Positions 415 to 64,000 of a stretch of DNA of 64,000 nt are shown here, one piece after another. Both the position numbers and the translations under genes were made by a program. The DNA is from Macrostomum lignano (taxonomy: Eukaryota): the NCBI GenBank assembly GCA_002269645.1, contig NIVC01002134.1, forward strand, positions 102,146 through 166,145, in the 5' to 3' direction. Position 1 is the first letter of the stretch. Every line of letters starts with the position of its first letter. The notes under the pieces are model-generated. The model searched no databases, was not told where the DNA came from, and worked only from the letters and a program-made list of their open reading frames with translations.

Positions 415-440
415 TTAGTATTTAAGCCAGTCACCCTTAC

Positions 441-3400: not shown

Positions 3401-4226
3401 TCACACTAATCTTTAACTGCATTCACACTAATCCTCAACCGCATTCACACTAATCCTCAACCGCATTCACACTAATCCTCAACCGCATTCACACTAATCC
3501 TCAACCGCATTCACACTAATCCTAAATTACATACACACTAATCCTAAACCGCATTCACACTAATCCTAAATCACATACACATTAATCATCAACCGCATTC
3601 ACACTAATCCTAAACCGCATTCACACTAATTCTAAATCACACACACTAATCCTAAACCGCATTCACACTAATTCTAAATCACACACACACTAATCCTAAA
3701 CCGCATTCACACTAATCCTCAACCGCATTCACACTAATCCTCAACCGCATTCACACTAATCAACAGCAGCAGTCACACAATCACAACAGAGCACAGTGAG
3801 CGGCATATACCTGAGTGGAGCTCTCAGTCCCTATTGGCGGATTAAAGGCCGGCCTGTTACCAGCCGACATGCCGCCAAGACCGCCAACTGTGGCGCCGCC
3901 GGCGGCGCCAAAACCACCAGAGGCGCCAAACAGGCCGGCGCCGCCACCGCCACCAGCAACTGTACCAGTTCCAACGCCGCCAAAGGCTGAACCAGTAGCA
4001 GCAGAAACACCAGCAGTTGGTTGCACACCCACACCAACTGTAGGCTGCTGCATCATGCCAAATGTACCAGTGGCACCAGTAGGCCGAGCAGCGGCGCCAA
4101 AAAGGCCAGTGGTGCCAGTTCCAGTGGCGCCAGCCGAAGGGCTGCCAAAAAGGCCGCCCCCAGTGCCAGCGGCTGGGGTTCCGACTGTTGGAGTTGTAGG
4201 TTTGCCAAATGGATTGCTGCCGAACA
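441..4226 (-). CDS. NUP98: Nucleoporin Nup98, N-terminal FG/GLFG region with GLEBS motif (partial; gene continues left of the window)
   Basis: Exons 4226-3811, 2920-1955 and 815-441 have GT-AG boundaries and join in phase 0. The spliced sequence FNPPIGTESSTQ|AKGGAQQTVNTKHMVITAMKEYQAGSLEELRLEDYQAGR matches the Nup98 GLEBS (Rae1-binding) motif. Many GLFG/FG repeats. The first coding base lies upstream (exon 4226 starts TG after an AG acceptor). Confidence 0.93.
1305..1850. repeat. 24-bp TTAGG-rich minisatellite in a Nup98 intron
   Basis: Unit TAAGGCTTTAGGTTAGGTTTAGGA, degenerate at both ends. Confidence 0.93.
3040..3765. repeat. 22-bp minisatellite in a Nup98 intron
   Basis: Unit CACTAATCCTAAACCGCATTCA, about 30 copies. 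Confidence 0.94.
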
Positions 4227-4669
4227 CTACAATTGGTTGTTTAGTTTTAGTTGTTTAAGTTAGTTTGCTTTGTCAGTGTGTTGCGTGAGCATACTACATA
4301 AGTCATGATTCATGAATATTTAGAAGTAAAAGTGAAATGAATACAGTGTGATACAATTCACAATGTATTCACCTATAGCTCAAGAATAATTCCATTTACT
4401 AGATGATTGAACATGGAATTTGAGAACCCTGATTCAAATGGATCATTAGTTGCAGAATATGAATCCAGTAGAGATATTAGCTATTAAAACCTGCAGATTT
4501 TCAATTTTTTAAAGCAAAACCCTAAATTCCAATTAATAGAACTATCTTTGCATTGCTTTTTTTAATTTGAAGTCATGCTCAAACAAAAACTTGTTAACAG
4601 TTAGGAAAAAGGCTAACAAAGATGGGAGCAAATACATGTTAAATTAAGATTTGAGGCTTTTGCAACTTT

Positions 4670-5439: not shown

Positions 5440-6200
5440 AATTGCGACTTAGTTGCTCCTTTTATGACTTTACCTAACTAATCATTTTGCAATTTATTTA
5501 ATTATTTTGCAACTTACCTAATCATTTTTGTGACTTAGTTGCTCTTTTTGCAACTTATCTAATCATTTGTACTGCTTAATTTGCTTTAGTTGCAACTTGT
5601 TTTTCTTTTGCTTTATTATTTTATTTCCCTACACTGCACTTTTTTCTTTTTTTCTTGCCTTTCTTTCCTTTTTTGTTTTTGGCATTTTTCATTTTTGGTT
5701 AACTCAACTTTGCAACTTACCCTAGTCCACTACAATTTATAGTGGCTAGATCGGCCATGTCTGCCAGCAGTTGCGCATGTATGGCGGAAGAAATATTAAC
5801 ATTAGTTACTTGCTATCTGATAGATACTTGCTATCTAGGAGTAGGAGATATTGCTATTGTATCTAGAGGTTGGTGCTTACTATTAAGGGATGCTTACTCT
5901 CAAAGGAGAAGGGTATACTTGCTATATATATATATAGGATTCTTTTTATCTAAGGATTCTTGCTATCTGCAATTATAGGATACTTGCTATTTGCAATTAT
6001 AGGATATTTGCTATCTAAGGGATACTTGCTGTCTAGATAATGCTTGCTATCTAGGAGATACTTGCTATCTAAGTAAATACTTGTTATCTAGATAGATGCT
6101 TATTATCTAGATGGATGCTTGTTATCTAAAGAGATATTTGTTATTTATTTCTAAAAAAATATCTCTTAGAAATAAAGAAATATTTCTAAGAGGATGCTAG
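5440..6200. repeat. Two degenerate minisatellites
   Basis: GCAACTTACCTAATCATTT-like units at about 5440-5720 and ATACTTGCTATCTAG-like units at about 5790-6200. Confidence 0.7.
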
Positions 6201-8308
6201 CTATCTTAGGCCTAAGTTAGGGACAATTTCTATTTAAGAAAAAGAATGTCTATTATCTTTATGAAACTTTTTTATTTTTTTTTTATTAATTTTACAAAAA
6301 GAGATTCATAGTAAATATCTTCATCCATGATAGTTGTACTCAAATAAGATGATTTGTAAAACAAAAGAATTAGTTTTTTAATGTGCTTTTTTAATTGTTT
6401 TCCATGGATAATTTTTGCTCCTTGGCCTTACTTATTATGTGCCCTGAAGGAAGCACTAGATTGCTAAGTTTAGAACTAAACTAGGCCTATTGGAGTATTG
6501 AAATTGAAATGGATTTTTAAAAAGAAAAAGTAAAAAAAACATTTTAATTAATATAATTTTAATCATAACATAAGCCGATAAGGCTAAGGGTAGGGACTTC
6601 AGTGAGATTTTAAAAGTTTTTTTTGTTTTTTTTGCATCATTTTCAACTTTCAAAATCTCACTAAAGTTCCTACTAAGCTAATATTTTAGGGCAATATTCA
6701 TCCTTATAGTTACTCTATCCTATAGTATATTGACTTGGATATAAATATAAAACATTTTTATTTTTATGGCAAAAATTAAAGAAATCATATTAAAAGACAT
6801 TAAGACAGTTACTTACTTTTTAGATTTTTTGTAGCACTTGGGTCTTGTTCACTTGGAAAGTTAGGTATTCTTTAAAATTCACTATTAATTATCTATTAAT
6901 GTTTGTTAATAGTCAAAGACTTCTGTAGCAATTAATTTTCTCTTAACTCAAATTAACTATAACAATTATATGCTAGGGCATATGGCTTCTACGACTACAG
7001 TTCTACCTAAGTAGGTGTAGGTTCAATTTATCGGACTCTATAACTTAATTATCAAAAAATGAATTCGAATTTGTTTAATTACAGAGCTGGCTTTCCAAAC
7101 ACAAAGTCAGTTTTAGCAGGCCTTCAGAAAGAAAATGAAAACTTTATTTTAATTGCTTATATCTTTATAACTTACTAGTTATCAAAACTATGAGCACTTA
7201 GTCATTTAGTTTATGCTTTGAATTAAGCGCTACACTGTTATTAAACCGCAATTATAAGTATCTCAGGTTGTACTGTACTAAAGCTGTTTTTAGCTGTGCA
7301 TTTGCTTATTACGTTATTTACCCTTGATTACAAATTACAATGCAGAGGAAGAAAAAATATTTTTAATCTAGATGTCATTCAGATTGCGAAATCAAAAAAT
7401 TCACTATATAATAGAAAGTTAAAATATGCAAGCAGAATAACAACATATTTTTTTATTATTTGTACTTACTGCAAACAGAATACCGATAAAAATAATTTTT
7501 GTTAAAAAAATACAAATTAAAAGTGTAAAAGGGTAATTTATTCTACTTTTTATCACCGCTTTGCGTCGCAAGTTTTTTGAAATGGCTTAATATCTAAAAA
7601 TAGTTCACGACTCTTTTTCAATTTAAAACTTTAATAAATCTTCTGCGACGCTATGGACCGACCAAAAAAATGTCATCTATCTTTGTATAATTTTCTCATG
7701 TTTTTTATTGCACCTGGTGTGTTTTTATCTAGCCATTACTTTTAGTAGACTCTTTCATTTACCATATGAATAAGCAAGAGGACTCTATATATTTCTGTAT
7801 TTGGAAATTTGGATTGGATCTGGATGGAGTGTCAGTACTCTGTAGTCAGTACCAGTCAGTAGCAATCAATTTTGACTCAGGTCTCTTTTTTCAATATGCA
7901 CTCTTAGCATTATAGCATAATCTATTTATAAGCAGATAATATGCTGTATACTTGTAACACTTGCAGAATAATAGTAGGTAAGTAGGAGAGTCTCATTCCA
8001 CTTAGGCAAAGCTCCGCATTCCAAATTATATTAATAATCAAGTTGGCAGCAGTGGTCTGTCACAATATATTTATATTAGAAGACATTTTCCTAGCTTAAA
8101 ACAAATTATAATAATAATATAGAATATTTATTATGATACTATTGTTCCATTTTTTGAAAATCTTATAGCTAAATTTATTTATCATTTATTATCAATGCAA
8201 TTATATAGGATTACTAAACTTTTATTTGCATGAAATCAGATTAAAAATACAAACTTGAGCCAATTCAAGGCACTTTCCAAGTTTACCCTTTGAAATCCTT
8301 CAACTGGC

Positions 8309-23500: not shown

Positions 23501-26500
23501 TTTGTTGTCACTGATGCGTTTTATGTGCTAAATTGATAGATACGAGCGTAAATTTTAGTGCTGAAAAGTACGGCAGAGACTGGTACAGGGAGTATTTTGG
23601 ATAATCCTAGTCGTTGCCACTGTCTCCTAGTGGTCGCCACTGTCTCCTAGTGGTCGCCACTGTCTCCTAGTGGTCGCCACTGTCCAAGAGGAGACAAAAG
23701 TTGAGCTCCTGTCATTTGTTGGGCTTGATTACCTCTTATTTAGTTTTTTTTGTTGGGGCGATTAAGGAGCGGGGATGTGGCTCACGATGTAGTATACTTA
23801 TTCTCATAGTTGTCAAAGCGACTGTCAACTTAAGTTCCGGTATCGAGTCCAAGGTGAATCACCCAATTCCGTATCCTCTGAACGCCCCATCCGGCAAGTT
23901 ATCGATTGCTTCGGACTCCACTCCGGCCTCTAAGTTGACACTCCTTTGACATTTCCTTCAAAAAGAATCCGAATTTTAACTTTTTCTCCCTTTACTTTGG
24001 AAAATATACAGGCTCCAAAAGGAGTATACTGCAAAGACATGGTCTCAAGCAAGAAAGCACCCGAGCCAAATAACCGATTCGGTTTTAGCGTTGAAGAGTT
24101 TGTCGGTAAGTTTACTAAGTTGCATTTGAACTACGAGCATACTTAAGATAGCTGCACTGCATTCGACCATATGAAATTTCTGCAGTACACAGTCATATTA
24201 CTTTGGGGCTGGTGCCTCAAGACGCATAGTGTACCGGTGTAAACGCCTGACCATTAGAAAGTCAGGACTGCTGTATAACCTGTATGAACGACTGTACACT
24301 TGACTAGCAGGAGTGTCTGAAACTCCCCTGAGCTCCCCAAACTAACTTGCTAAAATTTCAACTGCTTAAGCTATAGCACTATGTGTTTTAATATAACACT
24401 ACAACACTTCAACACTAAGTATGCTTCTATTGTCTATGGCAGTTGTTAATAATCAAATACAGTTCGACAGCGCGAAGCTAAGAAGCCAGAGCGGCATTTC
24501 CTATCGATAGCTTCACACTTTCGTTCCACTGCAATTATCTGCTTTTTCATAGTTGTAGCACCCGCTACAAAGTGGTAGCAGAGCGTGCGATAACACCATC
24601 TGGCTTACCTTACGATGCCCAGCAAACGCAGCAAGCGACAAACGGTGGCCAACACCACCGGCTCTACGTCTACTACAGAGAGGGACACAGCCTCGACGGC
24701 CCAAGAGTCGATTAACCGTGGCACGGTCCGCCCACCACCATTCTACCGCAAAGCGCCCGATGTCTGGTTCCGCCAACTGGAATCTCAGTTTGTCTTGGCC
24801 CGCATCACCTGTCCAACGACAAAGTTTCATCACGCTCTGTCCGCACTGCCGGAAGACGTCGCCTGCGACATTGCCGATGTAGAGGACGATTACGAAGCAC
24901 TGAAGTCAGCTGTGACGGAACTACTCCGGGCCAACCGCCACCAGCGCATCGAAGAAGCGCTCGCTGCGGTCGAGCTCGGTGACCGCCGTCCTACACAGCT
25001 AGTTACGGACATTCGACGGCGCTTCTCCGAAGTTGGCCTGCAGGTCGACGACTCGATCGTCAAGTCCCGCCTGCTGTCCGCCCTTCCCGGCAACATCCGT
25101 TCAGCGCTCGTCGGCCACGAATCTGAAGCACTCGACAACTTCGCAAGGATCGCTGACAGCATGTTGGCAGTCGCCGGTCCCACGACACCATTCCACACAA
25201 TCGCGCGAGCTACCGCTGCACCGTCAGCCCCTTCGCCAGGCAACGCCCGTGAGGCACGACCCCAGCGACGCACCCGACAGTCAAGGCAGAAGGTCTGCAA
25301 CGGCCACATCTACTACGGCGCAGAGGCTCGCACCTGCCGACCATGGTGCCAGTGGCCCGGACCAAAGCCACAACGCGTGCTCAAGAGCCGTCAGGCTACG
25401 CCGGCACAGTCGCGCGCCGCCAGTCCAACAAACGCGTAGGTCATGCGCCAGGGCCGAGCCATGACCTCAACGAGGCCGCTTCCTTGTTGTTACCCTGTAA
25501 ATTGTTCGGAAAAACGGTTCGTTTTGTTGTGGACACCGGTGCTGAGCGCTCCCTGCTGCCTTTGGACCTTGCACCTCGCCACCTGCTGGCACCCACGCAG
25601 GTCCGGCTACGCAGCGTCGATGGTCGCGAATTTAGTACTCTCGGTCAGTGCTCACTGTCTGTCGCAGTCCCAGAGCTACGCCGCCTGTTTCCCGCGAACT
25701 TCATCGTTGCTGATACACCGCCGATTCTGGGAGCCGACTTCCTGGCTAAGTTCGGTCTCCTAATTGACATGCGGAACAGACGTCTGCATGACCCGACTAC
25801 TCAACTTCATGCAGCTCTTCAAGCAATAGCAGACTCAGCCCCACAGGTGCTAGCAACATCGGAGTGTTAGCGACACCCCTCGATGCTTTCCCGCAGCTAG
25901 CAGAAGCCCCAGACTATTCGTCCGCACCTTCGTCTAGCACAGTCAGCCACCAGATAATTACCGACAGCAAGCCGCTATTCTGCCGACCTCGTCCACTCCC
26001 TCCAGCCAAGTTCGATGCAGCGAAGGCGGAGTTTGACAAACTGCTGCAGCTCGGCATCGTGCGACCTTCCGCCAGTCCATGGGCGTCCCCTCTTCACATG
26101 GTGAAGAAGAAGGACGGCTCGTGGCGTCCCTGCGGCGACTACCGCGCACTCAACGCAGTAACCAAGCCAGATCGCTACCCGATACCCCACATCGGACACT
26201 TTCACCATCGACTCCACGGGTCACGGGTTTTCAGTAAGCTTGACCTTGTCAAAGCTTACCACTTCGTACCCATTGCGGCGGAGGACATAGAGAAGACTGC
26301 AGTTTGCACGCCATTCGGTTCGTTTGAGTATCTGCGCATGCCATTCGGACTACGCAACGCAGCCAGTACCTTTCAACGGTTCGTCGACGCGATTTTCCGC
26401 GACATGCCATTCGTGGTCACCTACATTGACGATATTCTGATCCACAGCACCTGCCGCGAGGAGCACGAGGCACATCTACATGCCGTACTGCAACGCCTGT

Positions 26501-29500
26501 GCGACAACGGACTGCGTGTAAGCCCTCACAAATGCCAATTCTATCAGGATACAATCGAGTTCCTGGGCCATCAGATTTCTGGAGACGGGATCCGACCGCT
26601 GCCCGATCGAGTCGATGCCCTACGTGCTCTTCCTCCACCCAAGGACAGCAGGGAGTTGCAGCGATATCTCGGCATGTTCGGCTTTTACCAACGCCACATT
26701 CAGCACTACGCACAGCTGCTACTCCCGCTGCGACAACTTTTCCACGGCACCTTCAGTTGGCTCCCAGAACATGACCAGGCATGGCGGGCGCTGCAAGACG
26801 CGCTCGCTGACGCGGTCACTCTCGCTTTTCCGCATCCGGAGGCCAACTTCACAGTAACAACGGATGCCAGTGCCATGGCGATCGGTGCCTGTCTGCACCA
26901 GGTCGTAGACGGCGAGTCTACGCCTCTCGCGTTTCTGTCCAGAAAGCTTTCCGACACCGAAACTAAATACAGCACCTTCGACCGGGAGCTACTTGCTATC
27001 TTCGCCGCCATCAAGGCATGGAAGCACCTGCTGCAAGGCCAGACAGTGACGGTATTCTGTGACCACAAGCCAATTATCGGAGCCTTCGCAAGCAGCAAGG
27101 AACGCTTCTCGGACAGACAGCAGCGCCAGATGTCAGCAATCTCAGAGATTGTCACAGACGTGGTTCACATCGCCGGTAAAGACAACGTCGTTGCTGATGC
27201 GCTGTCCCGTCCCTCGAAAGACGCTGTCAACATCGCAACATCAGAAGTTCTGGTCGCGGCCGCTCATGAGATAGCCCCAACGGACGAAGACACTCAAATG
27301 TTGCCCAGTTTTGACCTGCCCGCAATTGCACGCGCTCAACAGCTGGATTCAACGTTGCCATCGCAATCCAGCACTTTCAAGTTGTTCGACATCGGACTGA
27401 CTGACTGTAAACTGCTCTGCGAAACGTCATACCCCAATCCGCGACCAGTCGTTCCACCAGACTTGCGAAAACACATCTTCACATCGATTCATTCATTGGC
27501 CCATCCTGGTGTCAAGGCGAGCTGTCGATTGATCACCCATCGCTACTTCTGGCCGGAGATCTCTCGCGATGTGCGCCGTTGGACGGAGGAATGCCTACAA
27601 TGCCAAGCCAACAAAGTAACTCAGCATGTACACCGACCATTACACCAGTTACCGACTCCCTCTCAGCGATTCGCGACGGTACACATGGATATTGTCGGAC
27701 CACTAACACCACCAGAGGCTAACGGTCAACTACAGCCACGTTATCTACTGACAGTCATCGACGCCTACACCCGATGGTTGGAGGCCATTCCGCTGATAGA
27801 CATCTCTGCCGCATCTGTAGCTCAAGGATTCCTCAGCGCCTGGGTGTCACGCTTTGGCCCACCCCTGACGCTCATTACGGACCAGGGTGCCCAATTCCGT
27901 GAAGAGCTCATGGAAGAGTTTACTAAGCTGTTCGGCATCCATCACATAAGAACCTCAGCGTATAACCCCCGAGCCAATGGTCTAGTGGAGCGAGCACATC
28001 GCTCTCTGAAGGCTGCTCTTCGTGCGCGAGGTCGCTGTTGGTTACAACAACTGCCGATTGTCCTACTCGGACTACGAATTCAACCTAATGATGCCGGCCA
28101 CTGCCCATTCTCCGGTGTAACAGGCGAGCAACCGATCGTACCACCGGTAGTCACAGAGGATGCCAGCCTGAGCCAACTATCCAATCGTCTTCACAATCTG
28201 TTCTACCCCTACCGTCTGCCACGCACGCGCGCAACACCGGTGCACCTTCCGGACAACCTACAGAGCTGCAGCCACGTCTGGCTCCGGCTCGACCGTGTCC
28301 GTAAGCCGTTGGAAGCACCTTACCAAGGTCCATTTCCTGTTCTGCACCGTTCACCGCTCACCTTTACACTCGACATCCGCGGGACACCTACGAGCGTTGC
28401 AATCGACCGCGTTAAACCAGCACGGTTGCCCACTCCCCAGCGCGATGAGCCTACCAAGACCTCCGATACGGATGAGCCCATCCGAGCAAGGTTGAGACCC
28501 CGCCGTGTCACTTTTGCGTGAACTTTGTGTGGTTTGTGCCCCTATGGACACTAAGAACATGTTCTTGTTTGTGCATGATGCTGTTTTCATGATGTTACTG
28601 TACCGAACCGATGCACATATAGTTATCTTCCTTTTGGGAGGGGGGGGTAGTTATAGCACTATGTGTTTTAATATAACACTTCAACACTAAGTATGCTTCT
28701 ATTGTCTATGGCAGTTGTTAATAATCAAATACAGTTCGACAGCGCGAAGCTAAGAAGCCAGAGCGGCATTTCCTATCGATAGCTTCACACTTTTGTTCCA
28801 CTGCAATTATCTGCTTTTTCATAGTTGTAGCACCCGCTACAAAGTATTTGTCAGCGTCCTTTAACCCTATATACCCGACCTCACAACATCGCAGGTCTGT
28901 CAAGCGGTACACCCTCCCAATCGAGCAGCCCTACAACATGCACGAGTCGTACGATCAGCAGGCTAACATCACCATGATGGAGGGCGACGCGACACTGTTC
29001 TTTGCCACAGACAAAGGAAAATACGGGACTGGCCGATTGGCAAAGATTAACGACTTCTCGCGCGTAAGATCTGCAGGATGAACTACGATTTTCTGTAGAA
29101 GAGCTTCCATAAGAATCTTTGCGCGGAATCTTTGTCGGAATGTCGCAAGAATGGGCCACTCGCTATCTGTGACTGTGTATTTCATTCACAGAGAGGTGAA
29201 ACTAGCTCGTGGCGATAGACATTCAAGACGGTCAACAAGCGTTACTCATTCGTAGAATTAAAAAACTCAGATTGGTTTATTAGAAGCAGAAGGCTGTGTG
29301 CACCCTGGCGCACTTTAAGCGACATTGTCACACAACCGGCGAGAGGCATTACTGCCTATTCGGCCGACTCCCCTGAGCAGGCACACAAGCGCGCGATACG
29401 TACGCAGTCGTACGCACAGGCACAAACTCACACAGGAGTGTACAGCGGCCCTAACTTTATTTATCGTTTGGCATGTACACTTCACTGTGCCTTGGGGGGG

Positions 29501-41359: not shown

Positions 41360-44329
41360 CACGCCTATGCAGAAGCTGAAAAATGGGGAAAGAAAATTCC
41401 CAAAGAAACTGATGCTTTTCCCAGCCCCAATGACCTATGCAGATTTCAAAAACAGTGTCAGACAAATCTAATCGCCTTGTCAAAAATGGTAATATGAATT
41501 TTTTATATTATATGCAAATTACATGTAATATGATAGGTATTTAAGGCGAAACCCATCGATAATATTAATGTTAATATAAGTTCGTAGTTTTAATATTAAT
41601 TTTAATCATTAAAGGAACGTGCAACTGTATTAGTATTAATATTATAAAATGAGAACCATGCACTTATTATTGCTAATGTCCGTATGGAATAAAGTGTGCA
41701 TGGATATTAAGTACACAAGCTAAATCCTAGAAATCTTTGCAGGCATGAAAATGCTTGACATCAAATATGGCTGGAATTGTAGCTAACAACTGCGCGCAGC
41801 AGGCATTCTGCATACTGCACATGCCCCAGAGGCCTGCGAAACCGCTGCCACGTCGAACGAAAGTCGCTGTGTGCAGACTCGACTGCCTGCTCACTGAAGG
41901 TCCCAAGGCCTGAGTTGAATCGCTCGCAGAACTCCGGAACATGGTGGAAAAGGGCGTGCATCTTAGGTGTCGGCACCAGCTTCAGTTCAGCGCAGCAGGA
42001 TTCCAGCTGGGCAATCTTCTGGCAAAAGTCGCTCATCAGCTGTTGCCCAAAGCATGCTTGGCGAACAGCATCGAATGCCATGAGAGCAGACGCATAGCCC
42101 TGGAGCCTTGATGGCAGGTTGCTCTTGAGCTCTTGAGCTTTAAGCAGCAATCTGACACACGCAGGGCCTTCCAGACACCCGCCGTGGTACTGCTCGCGAC
42201 AGATTCCAGCTGAATGCGCCCACTTGTATGCCTTGTCGTCGCCCCAAGCTGAGTTCAGCTGATCGAGCAGTTTGTTGGTCACACCAAGCATGATGTGCAG
42301 CTCTGGTGGTGGCACGAGGTCCAGCATTGGCGTAGAATCAGCCCCAGGGAGAAGAGGCTGTCTGACACAGCTTGCGTAGTTTCTTGCCAGTCGCTGGCAG
42401 CTACCAGCAGCCTCGAATGCCGTGGCCATCCGACGAATGGATCCAAGGGTTCTTATGGAACCGGCAACTTGCCACGGCGCCTGCCCCTCACAGTAGAGAC
42501 AAGGATGAGCTGCGGCATGACTTTGAAGGCCACACAGGATGTTGGCTAGCTTGAAGTCGCAAGCGACTGTGAACTTAATCGATGTCAAGTCTAGCTCATC
42601 TAGAAGTGCTCGCACATTTGCATAGTTCTCCTGGACATCCTCAGCAATCGCGATGATAAACAGTTTTTTTACGCCAAAGTTGCTTATTCGCGACTCCCTG
42701 CTCAGCTTCTTAGGTGTGGACTCTGCCTGTGGTTCGGTAGGCAGTACTGGGGCGACACTAAGGCAGATTTTTAGCGAGCCACCACCTCCGTCCATCCCCA
42801 GCTTCAATCTCACATCGAACTCACTAAATCCTCGCTTTGAGCAAATGAAGCTCAGCAGGCCCTGCAGATCGGGGCATATGACGGAACATCTTGTGGTATC
42901 AGTAAAGCTGCCACCTGAGGACTTTTGAGTGAATTTGAGCTGCCGCATCTCAAAAAAACTCTCCGCGATGCTGCCTGCGGCTGCCAGAGCTGCCCGCAGT
43001 CCGGGTTGCACGGCCTTACGACTGCCCTCCGCCTGCCTGATAATTGTGGCTGCCATGTTTGTCTGCCGGTCACTCAGATTGAGAGATGTCTTTAACGTTA
43101 CTAGTGTCTCGGTCCTCAGCGCTCTCTGCTCATTTGAATCACTTGCATGCCTCAGCTGCATTGGTGGGCCACCGGTGGCGCTGGAAATAGAAGCCGTTGA
43201 TCCATGTCCTGATGCTGCTGCTGCTCTTAGCTTTTCACGCATCACGTCATGAGCGATGTGCTCTTTTGATGTAGGGCTGAGCGTGCGCAGGTACTGCAAC
43301 TTGCTGGAGACGCTGCACTCGTGCCTTAGGCCTTTGCCCACAAGTGAGTGGCACCTAGTGCAGCGCTTCTCCGAGTCTCTGTCCTGGCTTCGAGTTGTTT
43401 CTGCAGGTCGTCCTTGGGGCAATTTATGGTTGGCCCGGCTGCTGTCAGACATGTATGGGTGCCAGACCGCCACCCGCTTGTTTGATGGGCTGGAAACTAC
43501 CTGGCAGATACAGCAGGAGCAGTGCGGATGCTCACGTGTGAGTTGTGGCAAAACCTCCAAATCTGCAACAATTTGAAGGTATGGCAGTCGAGCAGGCAGT
43601 TCTTGCGGTACAGGTGACGTCTGTGACTGCAATTTCTTGCTGCAGCAGCTGCACATGCCTCCTGGCAGAGTATTACGGATGTAGGCATGACAGAATTCTG
43701 GCAGGATAAATTGCTCGATGAGTTCTGCCTGAGCAGCTGAAATAACGCGATCGGCTTTGCGGAAGCAGAGGATGCAGCACCAGATACGATTCTCTTCATG
43801 TGTGCGTCGAAAGTTTGGCATCGCGAGGCCAGAGAACTGATTTGAGTACTGAGGGTAATTGTTTCAATTGACTGCAACTTTATTTTCAAAGGAAGTCTGC
43901 GTGTTAGCAAACTTGTGATAAGAGGCATGTTCTACTTTATGAATGTACATAGTCTGTTCATTGTTTCTCAATCCCTTAATCACAATAGATCTCAATAAAT
44001 ATGTACATTTGAGTTGTCTGCCAAAATTTCTATCTAATAATGTACAGCATTTTATGACGCCCTTAAATTTATGCTCTAAACTTTGCAATTGATGCCTGCT
44101 CTTGTTACGCAATTGTTTTCACTACTTGCAATGGCGCAACTGACGAATCTAATACTGAACATGCAGCTGAGAACACATAATTTCAATTTTCCATTCTATT
44201 ATTTTTGGACAAGGCGATTAGATTTGTCTGACACTGTTTTTAAAATCTGCATAGGTCATTGGGGCTGGGAAAAGCATCAGTTTCTTAGGGAATTTTCTTT
44301 CCCCATTTTTCAGCTTCTGCATAGGCGTG
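41360..44329 (-). mobile_element. Autonomous Chapaev (CMC superfamily) DNA transposon, 2970 bp
   Basis: About 128-bp TIRs (41360-41487 and 44201-44329) with CAC...GTG termini and about 3 differences; 4-bp TSD GGGG; single intact transposase ORF. Confidence 0.85.
41761..43821 (-). CDS. Chapaev-type DDE transposase (686 aa)
   Basis: N-terminal H-X7-C-X2-C...P-X3-C-X2-C and CSCCIC zinc-binding motifs. Core LGMDGGGGSLK, ACDFKLANILCGLQSH..HPCLYC, PELHIMLG, TPKMHALFHH and FSEQAVESAH supply D, D and E. Confidence 0.85.
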   Translation of the reverse strand: MPNFRRTHEENRIWCCILCFRKADRVISAAQAELIEQFILPEFCHAYIRNTLPGGMCSCCSKKLQSQTSPVPQELPARLPYLQIVADLEVLPQLTREHPHCSCCICQVVSSPSNKRVAVWHPYMSDSSRANHKLPQGRPAETTRSQDRDSEKRCTRCHSLVGKGLRHECSVSSKLQYLRTLSPTSKEHIAHDVMREKLRAAAASGHGSTASISSATGGPPMQLRHASDSNEQRALRTETLVTLKTSLNLSDRQTNMAATIIRQAEGSRKAVQPGLRAALAAAGSIAESFFEMRQLKFTQKSSGGSFTDTTRCSVICPDLQGLLSFICSKRGFSEFDVRLKLGMDGGGGSLKICLSVAPVLPTEPQAESTPKKLSRESRISNFGVKKLFIIAIAEDVQENYANVRALLDELDLTSIKFTVACDFKLANILCGLQSHAAAHPCLYCEGQAPWQVAGSIRTLGSIRRMATAFEAAGSCQRLARNYASCVRQPLLPGADSTPMLDLVPPPELHIMLGVTNKLLDQLNSAWGDDKAYKWAHSAGICREQYHGGCLEGPACVRLLLKAQELKSNLPSRLQGYASALMAFDAVRQACFGQQLMSDFCQKIAQLESCCAELKLVPTPKMHALFHHVPEFCERFNSGLGTFSEQAVESAHSDFRSTWQRFRRPLGHVQYAECLLRAVVSYNSSHI

Positions 44330-46066: not shown

Positions 46067-47265
46067 ATGGAATTAAAACTTAGAGTAATTGCAGCACTTC
46101 TGCTCGTGATCGGCTGTTGTGCAACTCTGATGACGTGTAGCTGCCAGAATGACCCGCATTCTAGCTACTCTTTCAAGGAAATCGTTGGCACGACCACTAT
46201 AAAAGGCTTGAAGCTGCGGGTATTCGAGTTGGGAAGAGGCGTTCAAGTGGCCGAACCGAGAGTCAAGCTCGGTGGGTCTTGCAGCACCCTCAGGTATAAC
46301 CGTCTTTACCTGAAGTATCAGTTGTCTGTACCGTTTCAAGTGAAAACTCCTGTTCTAAAGAGTACCATGGGCCGCGGAAAAAAAATTGGTCGAGTCATCG
46401 TTTCTCAGGTTGACGTCAAGTTGAACGCGGCACTCGCGAGTAAGAGTTCGAAGCTGACTGTGATTACAACCAGCAAGCGTGGCAGATGGAAACTTTTGTT
46501 CCTATGCGACACTTACGAGAGGTGCTCAGGACTGCGAGATGAACTCGTGAGCAATCCGTGGTCTCTTCAGCAGGCAGTGCAATTTAACCTGATCGGAGAG
46601 GTAGCTAGCTCTGCGGTGATGTTCGAAGCGCAAGCAAGTTTGACTCCATTGAATCTCAAGGACTGCTACAGAGGCCGATGGTTTGTCATTCAGCGACAGG
46701 TTAATGGCGATTTGTCATTCAAGAAAAATTGGGACGACTACGTCAAGGGATTCGGACATCCAAAGTCCAGTTTTTGGATCGGTGTGTACTCTTAGAATAA
46801 TCTAAGACTATAACAGCTGCTTTATCAAGGCTAGCTGATTCTGCACAGTTTTAAAATCGCTTACCATGCTTCCATACTGCAGGACTGGAGAGTCTTTTCG
46901 CCATCACTGCGACCAAAGAAACCGATGTTACTTGGCGCAATCCCGAGACTACACTTTGTCGACTGAGAATTGAAGCCGAAGGTTTGGACAAGAAGAAGTA
47001 CTGGGGTGAATATGGCCGATTCCAGGTCTTGAGCGCCGACCAGAACTACCGACTTCGAGTGGGCGATAAGAAAGCGGGCTCAACTATTGACGGTTTCATC
47101 AGGGTGCACAATGAGCAGCAATTTAGCACCTACGACAGGGATCACGATACAAATCCAAAAATGTCTTGCTCTCGAGTGTTTGGCTTTGGCGGATTTTGGT
47201 TTGGCAGCGGCTTAAGAGTGAACCCCAACCCCCAAAAGAGAACTTTTTGGAGTGTTAGAATTTAG
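46067..47265 (+). CDS. Secreted fibrinogen-related domain (FReD) protein with an unknown N-terminal region of about 190 aa
   Basis: Exons 46067-46781 and 46883-47265 (phase 1). Signal peptide MELKLRVIAALLLVIGCCATLMTCSC. FReD motifs WFVIQRQVNGDLSFKKNWDDYVKGFG...FWIGLE, YRLRVG, FSTYDRDHD, GGFWF. C-terminal end short. Confidence 0.85.
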
Positions 47266-56351: not shown

Positions 56352-57635
56352 ATGGAGATACAATCAAGAAAAAGTCCTATCGTAAATTCAGTGAATCTAC
56401 TGGAGATAAACAACCTCGAAGAATTCAGAAATTCCGAAGAACTTCTCAAACGTATTCCCCATTCAAAAGATTCTGAAATAGTTCTGCTGAAAAAGTTCAT
56501 AACACAAGGCTGGCCAGAATACCCTCCCAAACACATGCTTCCATACAGCAAGGATCGATCCGAGTACACAATACAGAACGGAATTGTCTTCAGAGGCATT
56601 CGGATTGTACCACCATCTCAACTGAGGCGCGAAATCCTGCACCTGCTTCATGAAGGACATCCAGGAATCGTGAGGATGATCCGAGTTGCGCGCCAATATT
56701 TCTGGTGGCCTTCAATCGACCTGAGCATCAACAGTTTTGTCCAGAGGTGCCCGATTTGCCAGCTAAACGCCAGGAAAAAGCCCAATGCAAATCTGGCTAG
56801 CTGGTCTGATGCTGAAGAGTTTTTCGAGCGCGTTCACCTGGACATCGCTTTCTACAAGGACTACAAGTTCCTGGTGCTGGTTGACGCTTTTTCGCGCTGG
56901 ATCGACATTCAGACACTTGGATCCATCACGTCTTCTTCGGTTATCAGTGTGTGTCGAAAGACTTTCAAATACGTTGGGTTGCCCAAGTTTCTGGTGACCG
57001 ACAACGGGACCAACTTTCGATCTGAGGAGTTTCAATCATTTCTGAAATCAAACAAAATTCAACAAATCCTCACGCCACCTGGGCACCACCAGTCCAACGG
57101 TCTCGTTGAGCGCATTATTCAAGTTTTTAAGATGGCTCTCAAGTGTTCATCTGGTGAAGTCGATGTGGAACACTCAGTTGCTTCTTTCTGCTTAAGACAA
57201 AACACCACACCTTCTTCAATCGGTGCGATTCCTGCCAGTCAAGTTTTTATAAAAATTCCACGTACCCGTCTATCAGCTACGTGCACAGAACTGCATCAGC
57301 CAGCGGAAGACTCTTCCAAACCAGTCTACATCCGCATCGAGACTAAATCTAGCAAGGCTGGGGAGAAGATCACTTCCAAGTTCGGTTCAAATACATCTAC
57401 TGATAGCCGAAACAGAATGGTGCATCAATCTGACATCAATGCGAGGACGGCCACGGCGGATGAGGAACCACCGGTTCAAACTACCCCGGAGTCTGATGAG
57501 TCTCCTGTTCCTTCCTCCGGTGCGTCAGTACCAATCGTACCCGATTTGCCAAATTCTCATGCAACAGCCAATCCACGGGTTTTTCGACGGAGTACTCGTC
57601 TACGCAAAACACCCGACAGACTGACTTACTACTGA
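56352..57635 (+). CDS. Gypsy-type integrase region of a 5'-truncated LTR retrotransposon
   Basis: LLHEGHPGIVRM...CPIC zinc finger; RVHLD, LVTDNG, SNGLVER (DDE). No RT upstream; the ATG next to the minisatellite is probably not native. Confidence 0.88.
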   Translation: MEIQSRKSPIVNSVNLLEINNLEEFRNSEELLKRIPHSKDSEIVLLKKFITQGWPEYPPKHMLPYSKDRSEYTIQNGIVFRGIRIVPPSQLRREILHLLHEGHPGIVRMIRVARQYFWWPSIDLSINSFVQRCPICQLNARKKPNANLASWSDAEEFFERVHLDIAFYKDYKFLVLVDAFSRWIDIQTLGSITSSSVISVCRKTFKYVGLPKFLVTDNGTNFRSEEFQSFLKSNKIQQILTPPGHHQSNGLVERIIQVFKMALKCSSGEVDVEHSVASFCLRQNTTPSSIGAIPASQVFIKIPRTRLSATCTELHQPAEDSSKPVYIRIETKSSKAGEKITSKFGSNTSTDSRNRMVHQSDINARTATADEEPPVQTTPESDESPVPSSGASVPIVPDLPNSHATANPRVFRRSTRLRKTPDRLTYY

Positions 57636-57911: not shown

Positions 57912-58989
57912 GCCCCTTTTTTGGGCCATGGACAATGAAAGGTAAGTCTTCAATAGCTTGATTCTCCCAATATGGATTAAATTGGCTTGGAAAATGTTTT
58001 ATCTGCGGTGGTGGGTTATTTCTTTAAAGAACTGCATAGGAAAAATTTTTAAGTTTGTTACTGCCGTTTTTAGTATATTGAATCATCAAAGGGGAACGTA
58101 CATGTAGATTTTTTTAGAATGGCGTAGTAAATGTGAATGTACATGTACGAACGTATAGATATGTAAGCATTATAACAGAAATTAAAGTCTTTAGAAGTAT
58201 TCCGCAACTAACCATCACGTCGATACAAGTACTTGTACGAGTAAAGATTAGAATTATCTCTTTCCTATGCTCCGTGTGATTTACAAGTTAGAATTGATAA
58301 CGCTCATTCTTTTACACAGTCTTCGGTACATGTATTTATTATACGATGCCTCTGGGACACAATTAGCAGAAAATTGTCATTTCTCGTTCATTTAATTCGG
58401 CCATGGGCATTCCATTAGACGGCCACTTAGCTCAGTTTCCTGTGCAAGTTTCTATGCCAAAGATATGATCTGTCATCATTTGCGTTCCCGTGGTCTATTT
58501 ATCTTTTTTCCTATGTTACGATAATCCTGTTCCTTCATAGATTGACACAAAGATCAATTTTATTGCCAGCGTGAAACGCAATAACCGAAATCTTGTAATA
58601 TGGGCACCATATTTGGTAAATCTTCTGGGTAAATCACTCGTATTAGGTAAAACAGTCGATCAAACATTTTATACATTGGGACTTCCTCATCGCATGATCC
58701 CGCACAGGGATGCAATCATAAAAATATTACCAAAGCAAAAATTTATTGCGCTATTGTTTTCAATGTCTACCCAAACTAGCTCTCGTAAAGCCAAATTAAG
58801 GCACGTTTACAGTTACTAAATTACTATTCATTGCACATTCGTCAAACGAACATATGCGTAGGAATGGGGGAAAGTGGGACCATGCGTCCTCCCCACACTT
58901 TGCCAACAATGGTAACTGGCCCTTCCATAGTTTAAATGCAAAATGTTGACTTTTTTCTCATGTTTTACTCTTATTTCTGGTTTTTGCTG

Positions 58990-59263
58990 CTTTGCAGGAA
59001 TGCATTTTTCTGCAGGACGACAGAACATAGTGCCTGCGGCGCCAAAATGAGTGCCTGCGGCTCTAAAATGAGTGCCTGCGGCGCCAAAATGAGTACCTGT
59101 GGCGCTAAAATGAGTACCTGCGGCACCAAAATGAGGGCTGACACCGATTCTGAAAATAATCGGTACGTACATGATAATGTGCATTTCCTATATAAAAATA
59201 AATAAATCTAACTCGACGGACGGCGTGCGCCCTGTGCGTCCCCCCTCCCTAAATCCGCCACTG
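58990..59263. mobile_element. Partial element with the same 21-bp array but a different right end
   Basis: GCCTGCGGCGCCAAAATGAGT units and GACACCGATTCTGAAAATAAT spacer; ends CCCTAAATCCGCCACTG. Confidence 0.62.
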
Positions 59264-59771
59264 AACCTAGCCCTCAGTTTTTGAAACGTTCCTACGCATA
59301 TGCAAACGAATAATGTACGGATCAACTACTAATATGTACTCGTTAAAATCGAACTGTCAAAAACAATGAACTGCAAGCAAGGAGTCAAGCGATTCAAGCA
59401 GAAATACTTGCATAATTTATGGCGTAGTTAATAAGCAAAAAGTTGAACAGCTCATATAATATTGTCTCGTATTTCGCATGTAAGGCATGTATGCGTTGCA
59501 GTTAATACATGTAACAGTAAACGCTTTCTGCTGAGCTAGGATCGAGTTTTAAACTGACCCTACCGGGATCTTTCACTGGTTGGATTCGATGGCCAAGAGT
59601 TGTCTAATTAGAAACGGTCAGTGGGAAATATTAGCGAAGCAAAACTATAGTACGATATTGCAGTCAAACGTGTTATCCTAGGATTGGTCACATCACAAGC
59701 TCCAAAATCGTTATCAGGTGAATCAGAAGACAGCTAGACTCAATCTTGTCCAATGAGTACAAGAGGTTCTG

Positions 59772-59796
59772 ATTGGACTGCAGCAAAGTATAAAAG
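59772..59796 (+). promoter_or_regulatory. Core promoter of the secreted-peptide gene
   Basis: Inverted CCAAT (ATTGG, 59772-76) and TATAAAAG (59789-96), about 110 nt before ATG 59906; further CCAAT/ATTGG motifs near 59680 and 59750. Confidence 0.6.
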
Positions 59797-59905
59797 AAGA
59801 TGCTAGATTAAAACAAAACGTTTTTATGCTAATATAGAAGTGAGAAAAGCTAATTTTGTGAAATAACAAGCTAATTTCGTGTCTCTTCTGTAATTTTTCT
59901 CAACA

Positions 59906-62537
59906 ATGTTCGTCTTCTTCCCTCTGGAATCGAAGCCCTACCGCTATAGCCGAATGCTGTCAATTTTAATCTGTTTCGGATTCGTCATCGGAATGGTGAA
60001 CAACGTTGAATCATTTCGTCTTTTCGATGATGCGCTGAACATCGCGGATAAGAGAGTTGTCACTGGGGGTGAGGGTAAGTATATTTGATCAAAGTTTTTC
60101 ATCGATTAAAAAACTACAAAGACCAAAAATATTGTAAATGTTTAAGTTGGAACACGAAAATATGCTTCAAAATTCGGCTGATTTCAATCAATTTTGCCAA
60201 AAAAGCGACCTAGTTTGCCCATAGCAAAGAAAACACCACATACATACATAGCAAGATCAAAGAATGGCCCAGCGTGGACCTTATAACAGGATTTCAGCGA
60301 AGGACCGGCAGCGATTGATTCAAAGCATATCAGGATGGAGAGGACTGGCAAGATTTCGGTAGGCTGTTGGGCATCTCACGAAGAACCGTGACTTACATAT
60401 AGTTGGACAATTCAACGCAACCGGTCGTATAGAGTCTCTGCCTCGCGGAGGTGCCAAGCGGAGGTCCTTAACAATGCTATGATTGAGAGCATTTGTGCCT
60501 ACGTCTCCATTATAAACTCGCTGTTTATTGTTCACTGTTACAGTTTATTTCGTCACACTTCCGAAATGATTCTCAATAAAAATTCTTCTTGGCTTGCTAT
60601 GGGCAAACTAGGTCGCAGTTTTGGCAAAATTGATTGCAGTTTTCAAAGAGTTGTCTGTGGCTGAAACTGGTCATGACTGAGCAGACTTGGCCTAGACAGC
60701 AAAATTATAAGTGATATTTTTCCGCAAGCAAAATTGATTGCAGTTTTGGCACACTACGACTCGTATAGATCGCAAAAAGGTATAGTACAATAGCACATCT
60801 TATCTTATTTCGCATCTCTTGTCTCCCGACTCCTCTCGATCTCATCTGGCCAGGTAAAAAAGTTTTTATTACTGCACTGCGCCCTGCTTCCCGAACAAGA
60901 CGCAGACTCTGCGAAACCTACTTTTTTAAAAAGCATAGCTAATTGCAGTTGCACTAAGTACATGGACATTAAAGATTCAGTTTTCTTATAGAATGATAGA
61001 ACCCTATATAGGCATTTCCAGTAAACAGCACCACGCAAAAATTGCGAACTACTTTTTGTTGTTGTTAAAACTCTTTAAACCTCCTGAGTCAGGGACTCCT
61101 TTTACGACCTCTGGGCAAACCAGTCTTGAAAAAACACTGAAAGACGTGTCTGAAAGGCAATAAAATTTTGCTGGATCTATCAATCAAGCAAGTATCGATA
61201 GTTTCAAGTTGATATCCTATATTATCTTGCTAGGCACGCTCAAAGAATCAAATCCTGCAGGCTTAAAAGCTGAGGTAATGCACGATAGCATGATACTCGG
61301 AATCGCCTTTTTGTGTTACACTTACACGACTTTTAATACTTCTGTCACGTGCTGGGAAGGACTTTCGTTTGCTTACACACCATATACCCTCTTTGAAGGA
61401 TATAATATTTCAATATTTCGACTGGAGCCATCAGATCATTGAAGCTCATGAGTTGCCTAAAAGAAACTGCTCGTAAATGTTGAGGTTGAAGCGCCACTTT
61501 TTCAGAGTCACACAAATTTTGAAATTATACTCGTGTTTGGAATAGCTACTTTTCATAATATTCAGATATAGTAGGCAATAGTAAGCATTTTATTAAACTA
61601 TTAAACTTATAGTTTAATATTAAACTATAGTTATTTAGTTATTAGTTAGTTATTAACTTAGTTATTAACTTATAGTTATTAAACTTTATTGAGACGAGCT
61701 GTAGCCAATCGGAGAATTTAATTTATTGAAGTTTTTGCTATGGATCATGGGTTGGCAAACTCCGGCCCGATCCGGCCCTCGGGTCTTTTGAAACTTCAAT
61801 ATGATAGCAATCTGGCCCGATCAATGTTTATATCTCTTGTCAGCGCTCTTCTTTCTAATGTACTCTCTTCCTCTCTCCTCTCTTGTCATCTCTATTATCT
61901 CTCTCATCTACTCTCTTCTCTTCTCTATTATCTCTTTCATCTCCTCTCTCCTCTCTTCTCTTTTCTTTTATCTCTCTCCTCTCTCCTCTCCTCTCGTCTC
62001 GTCTTCCGTCTCCCCTCTCCTCATCTCCTGTCTCCTCTTTTCTCTCTCATTTCTCTTATCCTCTCCTCTCTCTTATTCTCTCTACTCCTCTCTTCTCCTT
62101 TATTTTAATGCCTTTCCCTTCTCTTATCTCCCTTCTCTCTTTTTCATTCCCTCTCTTCTCTTCCCTCCTAGGGCCCGCGGTCAATATCTATGTTCTCTAT
62201 CAGGCCATTAAGGTAAAATAGTCTGCCGACCACTGCTACAGATGCATGATGGCCTACATGTATGTACGTGTAAATAGCATAAAAGTCTATCATAAAATTA
62301 ACTCTTAAATAATCATTATTGTCTCAACGTTTCTCAATGTTACACTGAAGTATCTCAAACAATTGCCCACTTATCCGTGTTCCACCCGCAGATCCACTTC
62401 GATCGGCTCGTTTAAACGCAATTTGCTCAAACTTGTGCCGAAAAATATTCCGAACGGGTAGTGCATTCTGCAGCGGTCTGTTTACTGTTGCCTTGGGCTA
62501 CCCGGACTGCGTTTGCAATCAAAGCTGTCAGGCTTAA
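59906..62537 (+). CDS. Small secreted cysteine-rich prepropeptide, defensin/CS-alpha-beta-like (104 aa from 59906, 88 aa from Met 59954)
   Basis: Exon 1 59906-60074 (G|GTAAGT donor) and exon 2 62392-62537 (pyrimidine-rich CCACCCGCAG acceptor), phase 1, in frame. Product MLSILICFGFVIGMVNNVES-FRLFDDALNIADKR-VVTGGEDPLRSAR-LNAICSNLCRKIFRTGSAFCSGLFTVALGYPDCVCNQSCQA*. Confidence 0.7.
60264..60560 (+). pseudogene. Decayed Tc1/IS630-like transposase N-terminal HTH fragment
   Basis: With frameshifts it reads MAQRGPYNRISAKDRQRLIQAYQDGEDWQDFGRLLGISRRTVTYIVGQFNATGRIESLPRGG; several indels; no TIRs found. Confidence 0.55.
61746..62235. mobile_element. hAT-like MITE with internal CT-rich tract
   Basis: Ends CATGGGTTGGCAAAC and GTCTGCCGACCACTG; GGCCCG subterminal motifs; 8-bp flanks CTATGGAT / CTACAGAT (6 of 8 match). 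Confidence 0.62.
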
Positions 62538-63904
62538 AACCTGGGGGGACGCATATAAAAATTACCGTTTGATTAGCTGACGAGAGACAAAGGTGTTGTT
62601 GAGTAACTGTTTATCGCCATCATCGCGATCACCTAACTGCGCCAATGCCTCTCTAGATCTGGAAGGCCGCTCTTGAAAATATACATGTTAAGAGTATATT
62701 TTCCCAAGTTAGATAACATCTATTGATATTTACACAAAAAGAAGAGCATTGCTCCAATTGGACGCGTACCTTTTGTTTCAGCTATCAGTGGTAGCAAATC
62801 AATTCAAGCAAAAGTTACATCATGCACACATCAAAACAATATTGATGTTGTAAAAGCAGTATTTAAAGTAGCTGAAGCAATTACGCAACCGAAGAATTAA
62901 CCTGATAGACAATAAAATCAACAGTACTTTCTTCGTTCTTTAAATACTTTATAAAAAAATCACGAGCTGCATGCAGTGCAGACACACACTAAATTTATTA
63001 CTTACATATTCGAGCGTAACAGTGAAATGTAACAGAATTAGGAAGGTAAGCTACATGTCAGACTATACATGTAGAAAAAGCACTTGAAGCATGCATCAAA
63101 TATTGTTTGTCCTTAAATGTATCTTAGGATGAAAACCAGCGTGGTTTATGCATTGGTGTATTCAACTATTTTTCGCTACAATTGCTACCATTGTAAATTA
63201 AAGTTTATACCCGATTTACTGCCAATTCTGATTGTTTACTTCTACGAGCGTAGTATTTTAGCATAGATAGAAACTATTTTATCAAGACGTTTAATTCACT
63301 GCAGCGCGCAATCACCAAGATGGGTTCCAGAAGCAACCGAAAATATCACTAAAATGCAGTAGACGCTACACAATCTCCCTCAGATTTAACTGCTTCTGTC
63401 TCTTCACCCCTTTAAGACGGCTTTGAGCACAACCGAAGAAGCTATAGGAAATGGTCATTATGGTCCTGGGTTCTTGGGTCTAGGTGCAGCTTTGTAGAAC
63501 TTAGTCAGTCTGGTCACACATTCCCTTGTGGGCCGTTTTAGACCTTTGCAGGAACTGTTCTGCAATCGTCAAGAGTAACGGAGCCAAACTTGATGAATTT
63601 TGCGAGACGGTCAACCACTTTGCCTCTGCCTTCCTCCTTGCAAAGACAAGGGCCACGACTTGTTGAAGTTCATTTACACTGGATTGTTCGAGTTTCCTGT
63701 GGCAAATGTACTTGATTCAAACCATGAAGTACTTCATGAAGAACCATGAAGTAGCTTAGTGTTACTCGTAGCGTATTCCAGAAGTTTTATAATATGATGA
63801 GAACTACTTCAATCCTAGAAATCGCACCCGAGTCTCATTTCTTCTGGATCTTATTCCAAGTAGGCTATTTCTGTGTCTTAATTTTTCTTTATTTAAGTAT
63901 CTTA

Positions 63905-64000
63905 CAAGGATTACTGTACTTGATAAACCAAGGGTTAACTGCACTTGATAAACAAGGATTACTGCACTTGATAAACCAAGGGTTACTGCACTTGATAAAC
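63905..64000. repeat. About 24-bp tandem repeat (continues off the right edge)
   Basis: GGTTACTGCACTTGATAAACCAAG units. Confidence 0.85.

Follow-up and report, generated by a model that had tools for sequence, protein, structure and literature searches.

The cysteine-stabilised alpha/beta (CSαβ) peptides share a scaffold that is widely reused in antimicrobials and channel toxins. Drosomycin and the plant defensins end in CxCxxxC or CxCxxC, and in plant defensins the last cysteine pairs with a cysteine at the extreme N-terminus. In flatworms, Irvine et al. 2023 (PMC10414684) searched 33 species, including both Macrostomum lignano assemblies, and reported no CSαβ peptides, big defensins or myticalins, calling the absence of CSαβ peptides surprising. 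Here we describe a gene of the free-living worm M. lignano, on the plus strand of contig NIVC01002134.1, located within a stretch of 64,000 nucleotides (nt) that corresponds to positions 102,146 to 166,145 of the contig (hereafter the window, in which all coordinates are given unless a locus is named). We hold with high confidence that positions 59906-62537 hold a real gene of two exons whose product is a secreted peptide with six cysteines. The account that we favour combines this gene with a CSαβ-type fold containing a third, non-canonical disulfide, with cleavage at a conserved KR, with secretion and, as the most likely role, with defence; taken as a whole, it has a probability of about 0.55.

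The gene is organized as follows.

59906-60074, plus strand: coding part of exon 1, with the signal peptide, a short acidic propeptide and KR; its end is 60074 or 60068
59954-60013, plus strand: predicted signal peptide MLSILICFGFVIGMVNNVES, with V at -3, S at -1 and, by inspection, a 15-residue hydrophobic core
60014-60055, plus strand: propeptide FRLFDDALNIAD, then the dibasic KR (60050-60055)
60075-62391, plus strand: phase-1 intron of 2317 nt, or of 2323 nt with the upstream donor
62392-62537, plus strand: exon 2, with the last 2 nt of an Asp codon, PLRSAR, the full six-cysteine domain and TAA
62424-62528, plus strand: six-cysteine core from the first to the last Cys codon, with spacing and all six Cys the same in a paralogue

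As demonstrated by translation, the open reading frame (ORF) of exon 1 starts with the ATG at 59906 on the plus strand, and its coding part (59906-60074) encodes MFVFFPLESKPYRYSRMLSILICFGFVIGMVNNVESFRLFDDALNIADKRVVTGGE; an in-frame downstream ATG at 59954 lies immediately 5' of the hydrophobic core. Two donors are available, namely the consensus AGG/GTAAGT after 60074 and, 6 nt upstream and in phase with it, GGG/GTGAGG after 60068, while the acceptor is ccacccgcag/AT at 62391/62392. With either donor the exons join in phase 1, the frame stays intact and an Asp codon (G/AT) is completed. The product of exon 2 is DPLRSARLNAICSNLCRKIFRTGSAFCSGLFTVALGYPDCVCNQSCQA, terminated by the stop TAA at 62535-62537. 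Its cysteines are spaced C-x3-C-x10-C-x12-C-x-C-x3-C, and the chain ends two residues past the last one; the complete prepropeptide is 86-104 amino acids (aa) long. An earlier note on this DNA had proposed two exons joining in phase, and the join is confirmed by the consensus splice sites, the frame and a 96%-identical public model. The cysteine spacing given in that note, together with a net charge of +2 for a 41-aa mature peptide, was reproduced on recomputation. Its exon 1 ORF is likewise present, but the start coordinate of 59907 was one base off.

The spliced product matches UniProt A0A1I8G4C8 (here P0001; M. lignano, 92 aa) with 96% identity (E 2.8e-52). This public model reads ...KRIVTG/DPLRSAR..., spanning exactly the same junction as the window gene, and may either use the donor 6 nt upstream or come from a locus of its own that is without these 6 nt. 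No gene on record codes for P0001, and the exact window products are absent from a collection of ~15 billion proteins. When 1.84 billion cluster representatives were searched exhaustively with phmmer, the only true relatives were P0001 and a paralogue (here P0002; E 2e-7), which comprises M. lignano PAA48380, PAA79169 and PAA86856 (BOX15_Mlig008453, Mlig002236) on three contigs of up to 310 kb. Two further matches (P0003 and P0004) were spurious, being repeat proteins that align to the pro-region alone. The paralogue is 40% identical to the window product over the domain, with all six cysteines and their exact spacing retained, which answers in the affirmative the question, raised in the earlier note, of whether homologues conserve the spacing. 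Besides the cysteines, residues L2, L7, N8, L14, R16, F19, F25, G28, F30, G35, P37, D38 and V40 are invariant between the paralogues. The paralogous gene is likewise made of two exons; its intron, also of phase 1, interrupts an Asp codon 10 aa ahead of Cys1 (11 aa in the window). The three loci of the paralogue are nearly identical across exons, intron and upstream flank. The Mlig_3_7 gene models were derived from RNA-seq (PMC5730564), and the paralogue is therefore transcribed.

Neither a profile word-index search nor a metagenome scan found more distant relatives, and tblastn and a regex scan found no second family copy in the window. An apparent third copy ~6 kb downstream of the paralogue contains a stop and has no CxC, and was rejected as a chance match. 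On present data, the family is small, falls into two paralogue groups and is restricted to Macrostomum. The earlier note had presented the gene as hidden and possibly undescribed. This does not hold: a near-identical copy is A0A1I8G4C8, and the paralogue is found in GenBank and in file S5 of PMC10414684, in the portion covered here, as flatworm antimicrobial peptide (AMP)-like group 118, which was dropped from prioritisation since its peptides are longer than 60 aa. Group 118 belongs to the same family, has the same cysteine framework and is SignalP-positive, whereas its authors assigned it no fold, and the window-type gene (P0001) has no entry in the same portion of file S5. The family is thus already on record in UniProt, GenBank and the AMP-like list, yet structurally uninterpreted. 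At two of the paralogue's loci (L002 and L003), the gene (locus positions 6001-6510, plus strand) lies ~1.6 kb from a divergent DEG/ENaC (Pfam ASC) channel gene (locus positions 1-4373, minus strand). At L001 the neighbour is a RING-finger gene, and the DEG/ENaC adjacency at the other two may be coincidence.

The hydrophobic signal and the acidic propeptide with KR that the earlier note had described are seen in the sequence, and the equivalent segment of the paralogue is positive with SignalP 4.1 in the covered part of file S5 (PMC10414684). The propeptide before the dibasic site is not conserved, and its length differs (12 aa in the window, 4 in the paralogue). A mature peptide of 52-54 aa starting at VVTG is more likely, judged from the aligned precursors, than the 41-aa form that the earlier note had expected from cleavage at a furin-type RSAR site. 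The 41-aa form is doubtful because RSAR aligns with QRVK in the paralogue, so that R-x-x-R is not kept, because the KR of the window aligns with a KRR of the paralogue and is conserved instead, and because the segment preceding RSAR contains an invariant residue, Leu2, that forms part of the predicted helix. The predicted 52- or 54-aa form has a net charge of +3 or +2, the 41-mer of +2 and the paralogue of 0.

To describe the fold, we used AlphaFold2 (AF2) models of the exon-2 47-mer, on which the cysteines are numbered, computed from a three-sequence alignment. The model of the 47-mer has a mean predicted local distance difference test score (pLDDT) of 91.4 and consists of a helix (residues 2-19) that holds C11 and C15, followed by two strands (residues 28-33 and 36-41). 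The CxC motif (C39-V-C41) lies within strand 36-41, while C26 immediately precedes strand 1 and C45 immediately follows strand 2. The model of the full precursor, with a pLDDT of 53.8 overall, shows the same helix-strand-strand order (helix 46-64, CxC strand 81-87) and contains no N-terminal strand. In these models the CxxxC of the helix would face the CxC of the last strand, forming the cysteine-stabilised alpha/beta motif; the core of CxxxC plus CxC named in the earlier note is thus placed by AF2 in the helix and in the last strand, respectively. The i/i+4 and j/j+2 geometry suggests the pairing C11-C39 and C15-C41. A third pair, C26-C45, is proposed because the canonical partner, a Cys before the helix, is missing, and because C26 and C45 both lie at the open end of the hairpin. 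No Cys occurs between the signal peptide and CxxxC in either paralogue. The earlier note was right that the N-terminal Cys is missing, that there is no GxC and that an extra C-terminal Cys is present; the rewired third disulfide that it suggested, here C26-C45, is plausible on the model. Among the structural readings we prefer a CSαβ-like scaffold in which the third disulfide is rewired, and give it roughly even odds.

The predicted architecture resembles that of described CSαβ peptides in several ways. Specifically, the prediction shares with eurocin, plectasin, MGD-1 and insect defensin A a helix that carries CxxxC and a last strand that carries CxC; a Cys 10 residues past the helix pair is found in scorpion toxins as well, and the predicted order of a helix followed by two strands is that of insect defensin A. 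As in CSαβ peptides, the product is a secreted prepropeptide of small size that carries a dibasic site for processing, and the best weak matches keep five Cys aligned. The C-terminal C-x-C-x3-C has a spacing identical to that of plant defensins (e.g. KCICYFPC; the set of sequences validated against the PDB). The differences are equally specific. Unlike CSαβ peptides, the family lacks a cysteine ahead of the helix, which makes the canonical third disulfide impossible; AFC or PFC stands in place of the GxC gamma-core, cationicity is weak, 12 hairpin residues separate the cysteines as against 4-9, and the predicted helix is long, with 18 residues. Unlike in plant defensins, the N-terminal partner is missing, which leaves the Cys ahead of strand 1 as the only partner for the last Cys; comparison with a plant-only defensin profile by hhalign gave a P of 0.028. 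It is possible, though we put it below even odds and offer it tentatively, that the family represents a lineage-specific cis-defensin branch in Macrostomum, in which the ancestral N-terminal Cys was lost and the third disulfide staples the open end of the hairpin. If so, it would be the first CSαβ-type effector in Platyhelminthes and would add a new disulfide framework to the CSαβ scaffold.

Next, we consider how such a peptide may be made and used. The signal peptide would direct the precursor into the endoplasmic reticulum, and the exon-2 domain would fold into a single alpha-helix lying against a beta-hairpin of two strands. The helix CxxxC would be connected to the strand CxC by two parallel disulfides, in the cysteine-stabilised alpha/beta, or cis-defensin, arrangement, and a third, non-canonical disulfide would tie the C-terminal Cys to the one that precedes strand 1. 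A proprotein convertase would cleave at the conserved KR and release a 52-54-aa peptide starting from VVTG. The secreted peptide would act extracellularly, most likely as a host-defence effector and less likely as a channel or receptor ligand. Among the possible functions we rank host defence above signalling, but taken by itself this guess is weak and rather unlikely, and an antimicrobial or toxin function is purely inferred. If the CSαβ-type fold is true, the reported flatworm absence concerns detectable sequence similarity and not the scaffold, and the family would provide a concrete candidate effector for flatworm innate immunity in a transgenic model amenable to RNA interference, as well as a new disulfide framework for a widely reused antimicrobial and channel-toxin scaffold. 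If the fold prediction is wrong, the peptide is one more lineage-restricted secreted cysteine-rich peptide with a misleading 'Kazal-like' name.

The link to CSαβ peptides was examined by profile and structure comparison. The hhalign reference profiles (14 CSαβ peptides and 5 Kazal domains) consisted of sequences validated as sets against the PDB. The family scored against the CSαβ profile with a P of 5.9e-4 and a probability of 29% over 36 columns; the real score was reached by 3 of 200 shuffles with the Cys columns fixed and by none of 200 in which all columns were shuffled. Eight other families (knottin, beta-defensin, ShK, Kunitz, thionin, insulin, eclosion hormone and CHH) all gave P values of at least 0.045. 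Among PDB sequences, the matches that align the cysteines are both CSαβ peptides, the scorpion excitatory toxin 1wwn (phmmer, E 0.1) and the fungal defensin eurocin 2lt8 (family profile, E 1.4), the latter with five Cys in register; the remaining weak PDB sequence matches are Suppressor of Fused chains only.

A number of results weigh against the favoured account. A two-sequence EGF control profile reached a P of 0.0012 in hhalign, over 22 columns on the hairpin and CxC, and the CSαβ score is not specific since this control scores nearly as well. No Pfam family, including the defensin, toxin and Kazal models, matched the full product or the domain of any family member at E<=10. Foldseek against the PDB had a best E of 3.3 and returned no CSαβ, defensin or toxin structure among 41 matches, a method that is rather insensitive for disulfide-rich peptides of this length (47 residues). 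Both the N-terminal Cys of the canonical pattern and the GxC gamma-core are missing (S-A-F-C in the window, D-P-F-C in the paralogue), the pLDDT of the domain drops to 57-74 in the full-length AF2 model, and the family alignment holds 2-3 sequences only. Moreover, the predicted helix has no significant amphipathic moment (its hydrophobic moment is not above that of shuffles), and the disulfide pairing is deduced and not seen in the model. As for the role in defence, the net charge is low (+2/+3 here, 0 in the paralogue), AMP predictors were positive for the paralogue in 6 of 11 cases in the covered part of file S5 (PMC10414684), and no expression or functional data for either paralogue were found in the supplements of PMC5816591, PMC7336406 and PMC12896417 or by full-text accession search. 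The kinship to CSαβ peptides suggested in the earlier note is therefore not established, given no Pfam or Foldseek match, PDB matches at E 0.1 and 1.4, and an hhalign score matched by the EGF control. Together, the sequence evidence for CSαβ is suggestive, not diagnostic; most of the weight is carried by the predicted topology and by the positions of the cysteines.

A disulfide-rich fold unrelated to CSαβ, either an EGF-like hairpin plus a helix or a new mini-fold, in which CxxxC...CxC would be convergent or coincidental, is unlikely but keeps appreciable weight. The near equality of the EGF control and the CSαβ profile in hhalign (P 0.0012 vs 0.0005) speaks for it, as do the result of Foldseek, which found no structural neighbour in the PDB, the missing N-terminal Cys and GxC, and the confinement of the family to one genus. 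However, the EGF spacing C-x(4-14)-C-x(3-8)-C-x(4-14)-C-x-C-x(8-14)-C is violated, with only 3 residues between C1 and C2 and between C5 and C6. The part that fits this spacing is C3-x12-C4-x-C5 only, and the N-terminal half is predicted to be helical, whereas EGF is all-beta. Pfam detected no EGF match, the first two Cys lie in a helix in both AF2 models, and the PDB sequence matches that align the cysteines are CSαβ peptides.

Another explanation, which we regard as improbable though worth keeping in view, is a prohormone or neuropeptide-like precursor, from which cleavage at KR (perhaps also at RSAR) would free a cystine-stabilised receptor or channel ligand or a seminal-fluid peptide. The signal peptide and the conserved dibasic site are what such a precursor would have, the low net charge is atypical for antimicrobial peptides, and the family is lineage-restricted and divergent, its paralogues being 40% identical; two of the three paralogue loci adjoin the DEG/ENaC (ASC) channel gene, which may be a positional coincidence. 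Yet the product bears no likeness to known neuropeptide families, with P values of at least 0.15 for the eclosion hormone, CHH/ITP and insulin controls. It carries no amidation signal, and the same supplement and full-text search found no expression data.

A Kazal-type serine-protease inhibitor domain is very improbable. UniProt names both paralogues (A0A1I8G4C8 and A0A1I8HB23) 'Kazal-like domain-containing protein', an automatic name, and there are six Cys within ~45 residues, as in a Kazal-like domain, with a C-[SG]-G...Y-x-[DN]-C-x-C stretch. A loose likeness can also be seen, by inspection, between C-[SG]-G...Y-P-D-C-x-C and the Kazal C-G-x-D-G-x-T-Y-x-N-x-C-x-x-C, and the Cys1-Cys3 distance of 14 residues equals that of a classical Kazal domain. 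Spacing, length, predicted topology and profile comparison all differ, however. The cysteines are not arranged as C-x(6-8)-C-x(6)-C-x(10)-C-x(2-3)-C-x(~17)-C, and the chain ends 6 residues past the fifth Cys, whereas Cys6 of Kazal domains lies ~17 residues further on. In Kazal domains, as in the ovomucoid and PSTI structures, the hairpin precedes the helix and the fourth and fifth Cys are in the helix; here the AF2 order is helix, then hairpin, with Cys4 and Cys5 in a strand. Neither Kazal_1 nor Kazal_2 matched in Pfam at E<=10, and hhalign against the validated Kazal profile gave a P of 0.39 and a probability of 0.15%. The likeness of C-S-G...G-Y-P-D-C-V-C probably explains the automatic name, with PROSITE PS51465 as its likely source, and 'Kazal-like' is probably a mislabel. 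There is also very little chance that the gene is a non-functional relic or an annotation artefact made of two ORF fragments joined by chance, as might be argued from the exact window product not being in the ~15-billion-protein collection, an intron enlarged by repeats and promoter motifs at chance frequency, since an independent gene model is 96% identical, the frame is unbroken, the splice sites are consensus, and the six Cys, the intron phase, the signal peptide and the dibasic site are kept in a 40%-identical, transcript-supported paralogue.

Returning to the gene itself, two elements near its 5' end bear on promoter and start.

59750-59754 and 59789-59794, plus strand: CCAAT and TATAAA, a candidate core promoter 112-156 nt 5' of the first ATG
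59934-59935, plus strand: AG after the pyrimidine-rich run ttcgtcttcttccctctggaatcgAG, a possible cis-splice or spliced-leader trans-splice acceptor 18 nt before the ATG at 59954

The CCAAT and TATA promoter of the earlier note is present as motifs, but as evidence it is no better than chance, as 1.19 occurrences of the CCAAT/TATAAA combination are expected in the window and 2 are observed. The pair is plausibly positioned and compatible with a promoter, and in itself no evidence for one. The public model P0001 begins (PYRYSR) at the codon directly after the AG at 59934-59935, and in the paralogue the ATG is preceded, at a distance of 10 nt, by tttacAG (about 5989-5990 at L001). Common to both paralogues is thus a pyrimidine tract with an AG 10-18 nt 5' of the signal-peptide Met. 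In M. lignano, 38.8% of the genes are trans-spliced (PMC5730564). On the basis of the start of P0001, the tttacAG of the paralogue and this share of trans-spliced genes, we suggest that spliced-leader trans-splicing, or a 5' untranslated region intron, may occur at 59934-59935; the start would then be Met17 (ATG 59954), the first residue of a classical signal peptide.

The intron of the paralogue is 226 nt long and has the same phase and position as the 2.3-kb intron of the window gene. The latter contains, at 60185-60636, an element of 452 bp whose 43-nt terminal inverted repeats show 95% complementarity and which carries a short ORF, MAQRGPYNRISAKDRQRLIQSISGWRGLARFR; it looks like a miniature inverted-repeat transposable element or an internally deleted DNA transposon, and the window holds no further copy of the repeat. 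The same intron also holds an AT-rich 12-nt tandem repeat (TTAGTTATTAAC, 3.9 copies) at 61635-61682 and ~235 bp of CT-rich low complexity with periods of 5, 7 and 33 at 61863-62097. The inverted-repeat element together with the CT-rich and AT-rich repeats accounts for part of the extra length of the window intron relative to that of the paralogue.

Upstream of the peptide gene, by ~0.8 kb, a 21-nt tandem repeat (AGTGCCTGCGGCGCCAAAATG, 5.1 copies) occupies 59029-59135 and sits within a minus-strand ORF (58828-59184, 118 aa) that reads as a reiterated GTHFGAAGTHF.... Located 2.3 kb upstream of the gene, a 427-aa ORF at 56352-57635 (plus strand) encodes the integrase part only of a retroelement (Integrase_H2C2 and rve). 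The body of a Ty3/gypsy-type long terminal repeat retrotransposon lies at 24615-28521 (plus strand); it comprises a DUF7041 gag-like ORF (24615-25439) and an 885-aa pol ORF (25864-28521) with reverse transcriptase, RNase H, an integrase zinc domain and rve. Rfam gave no match in the window at the gathering score. Parts of host genes are present as well, namely an exon with a Nup98 Gle2-binding (GLEBS) segment at 1847-2926 (minus strand), with high GC content and strong skew nearby, and an exon with a fragment of a fibrinogen C-terminal domain at 46067-46795 (plus strand). These two exons, along with the Ty3/gypsy elements, support an animal source of the window DNA, and an insect or mosquito source is rejected by the 96% match to M. 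lignano. An ATG-initiated ORF of 686 aa at 41761-43821 (minus strand) has no Pfam match. Finally, a 24/48-nt tandem repeat (ACAAGGATTACTGCACTTGATAA...) occupies 63904-64000 and reaches past the window end.

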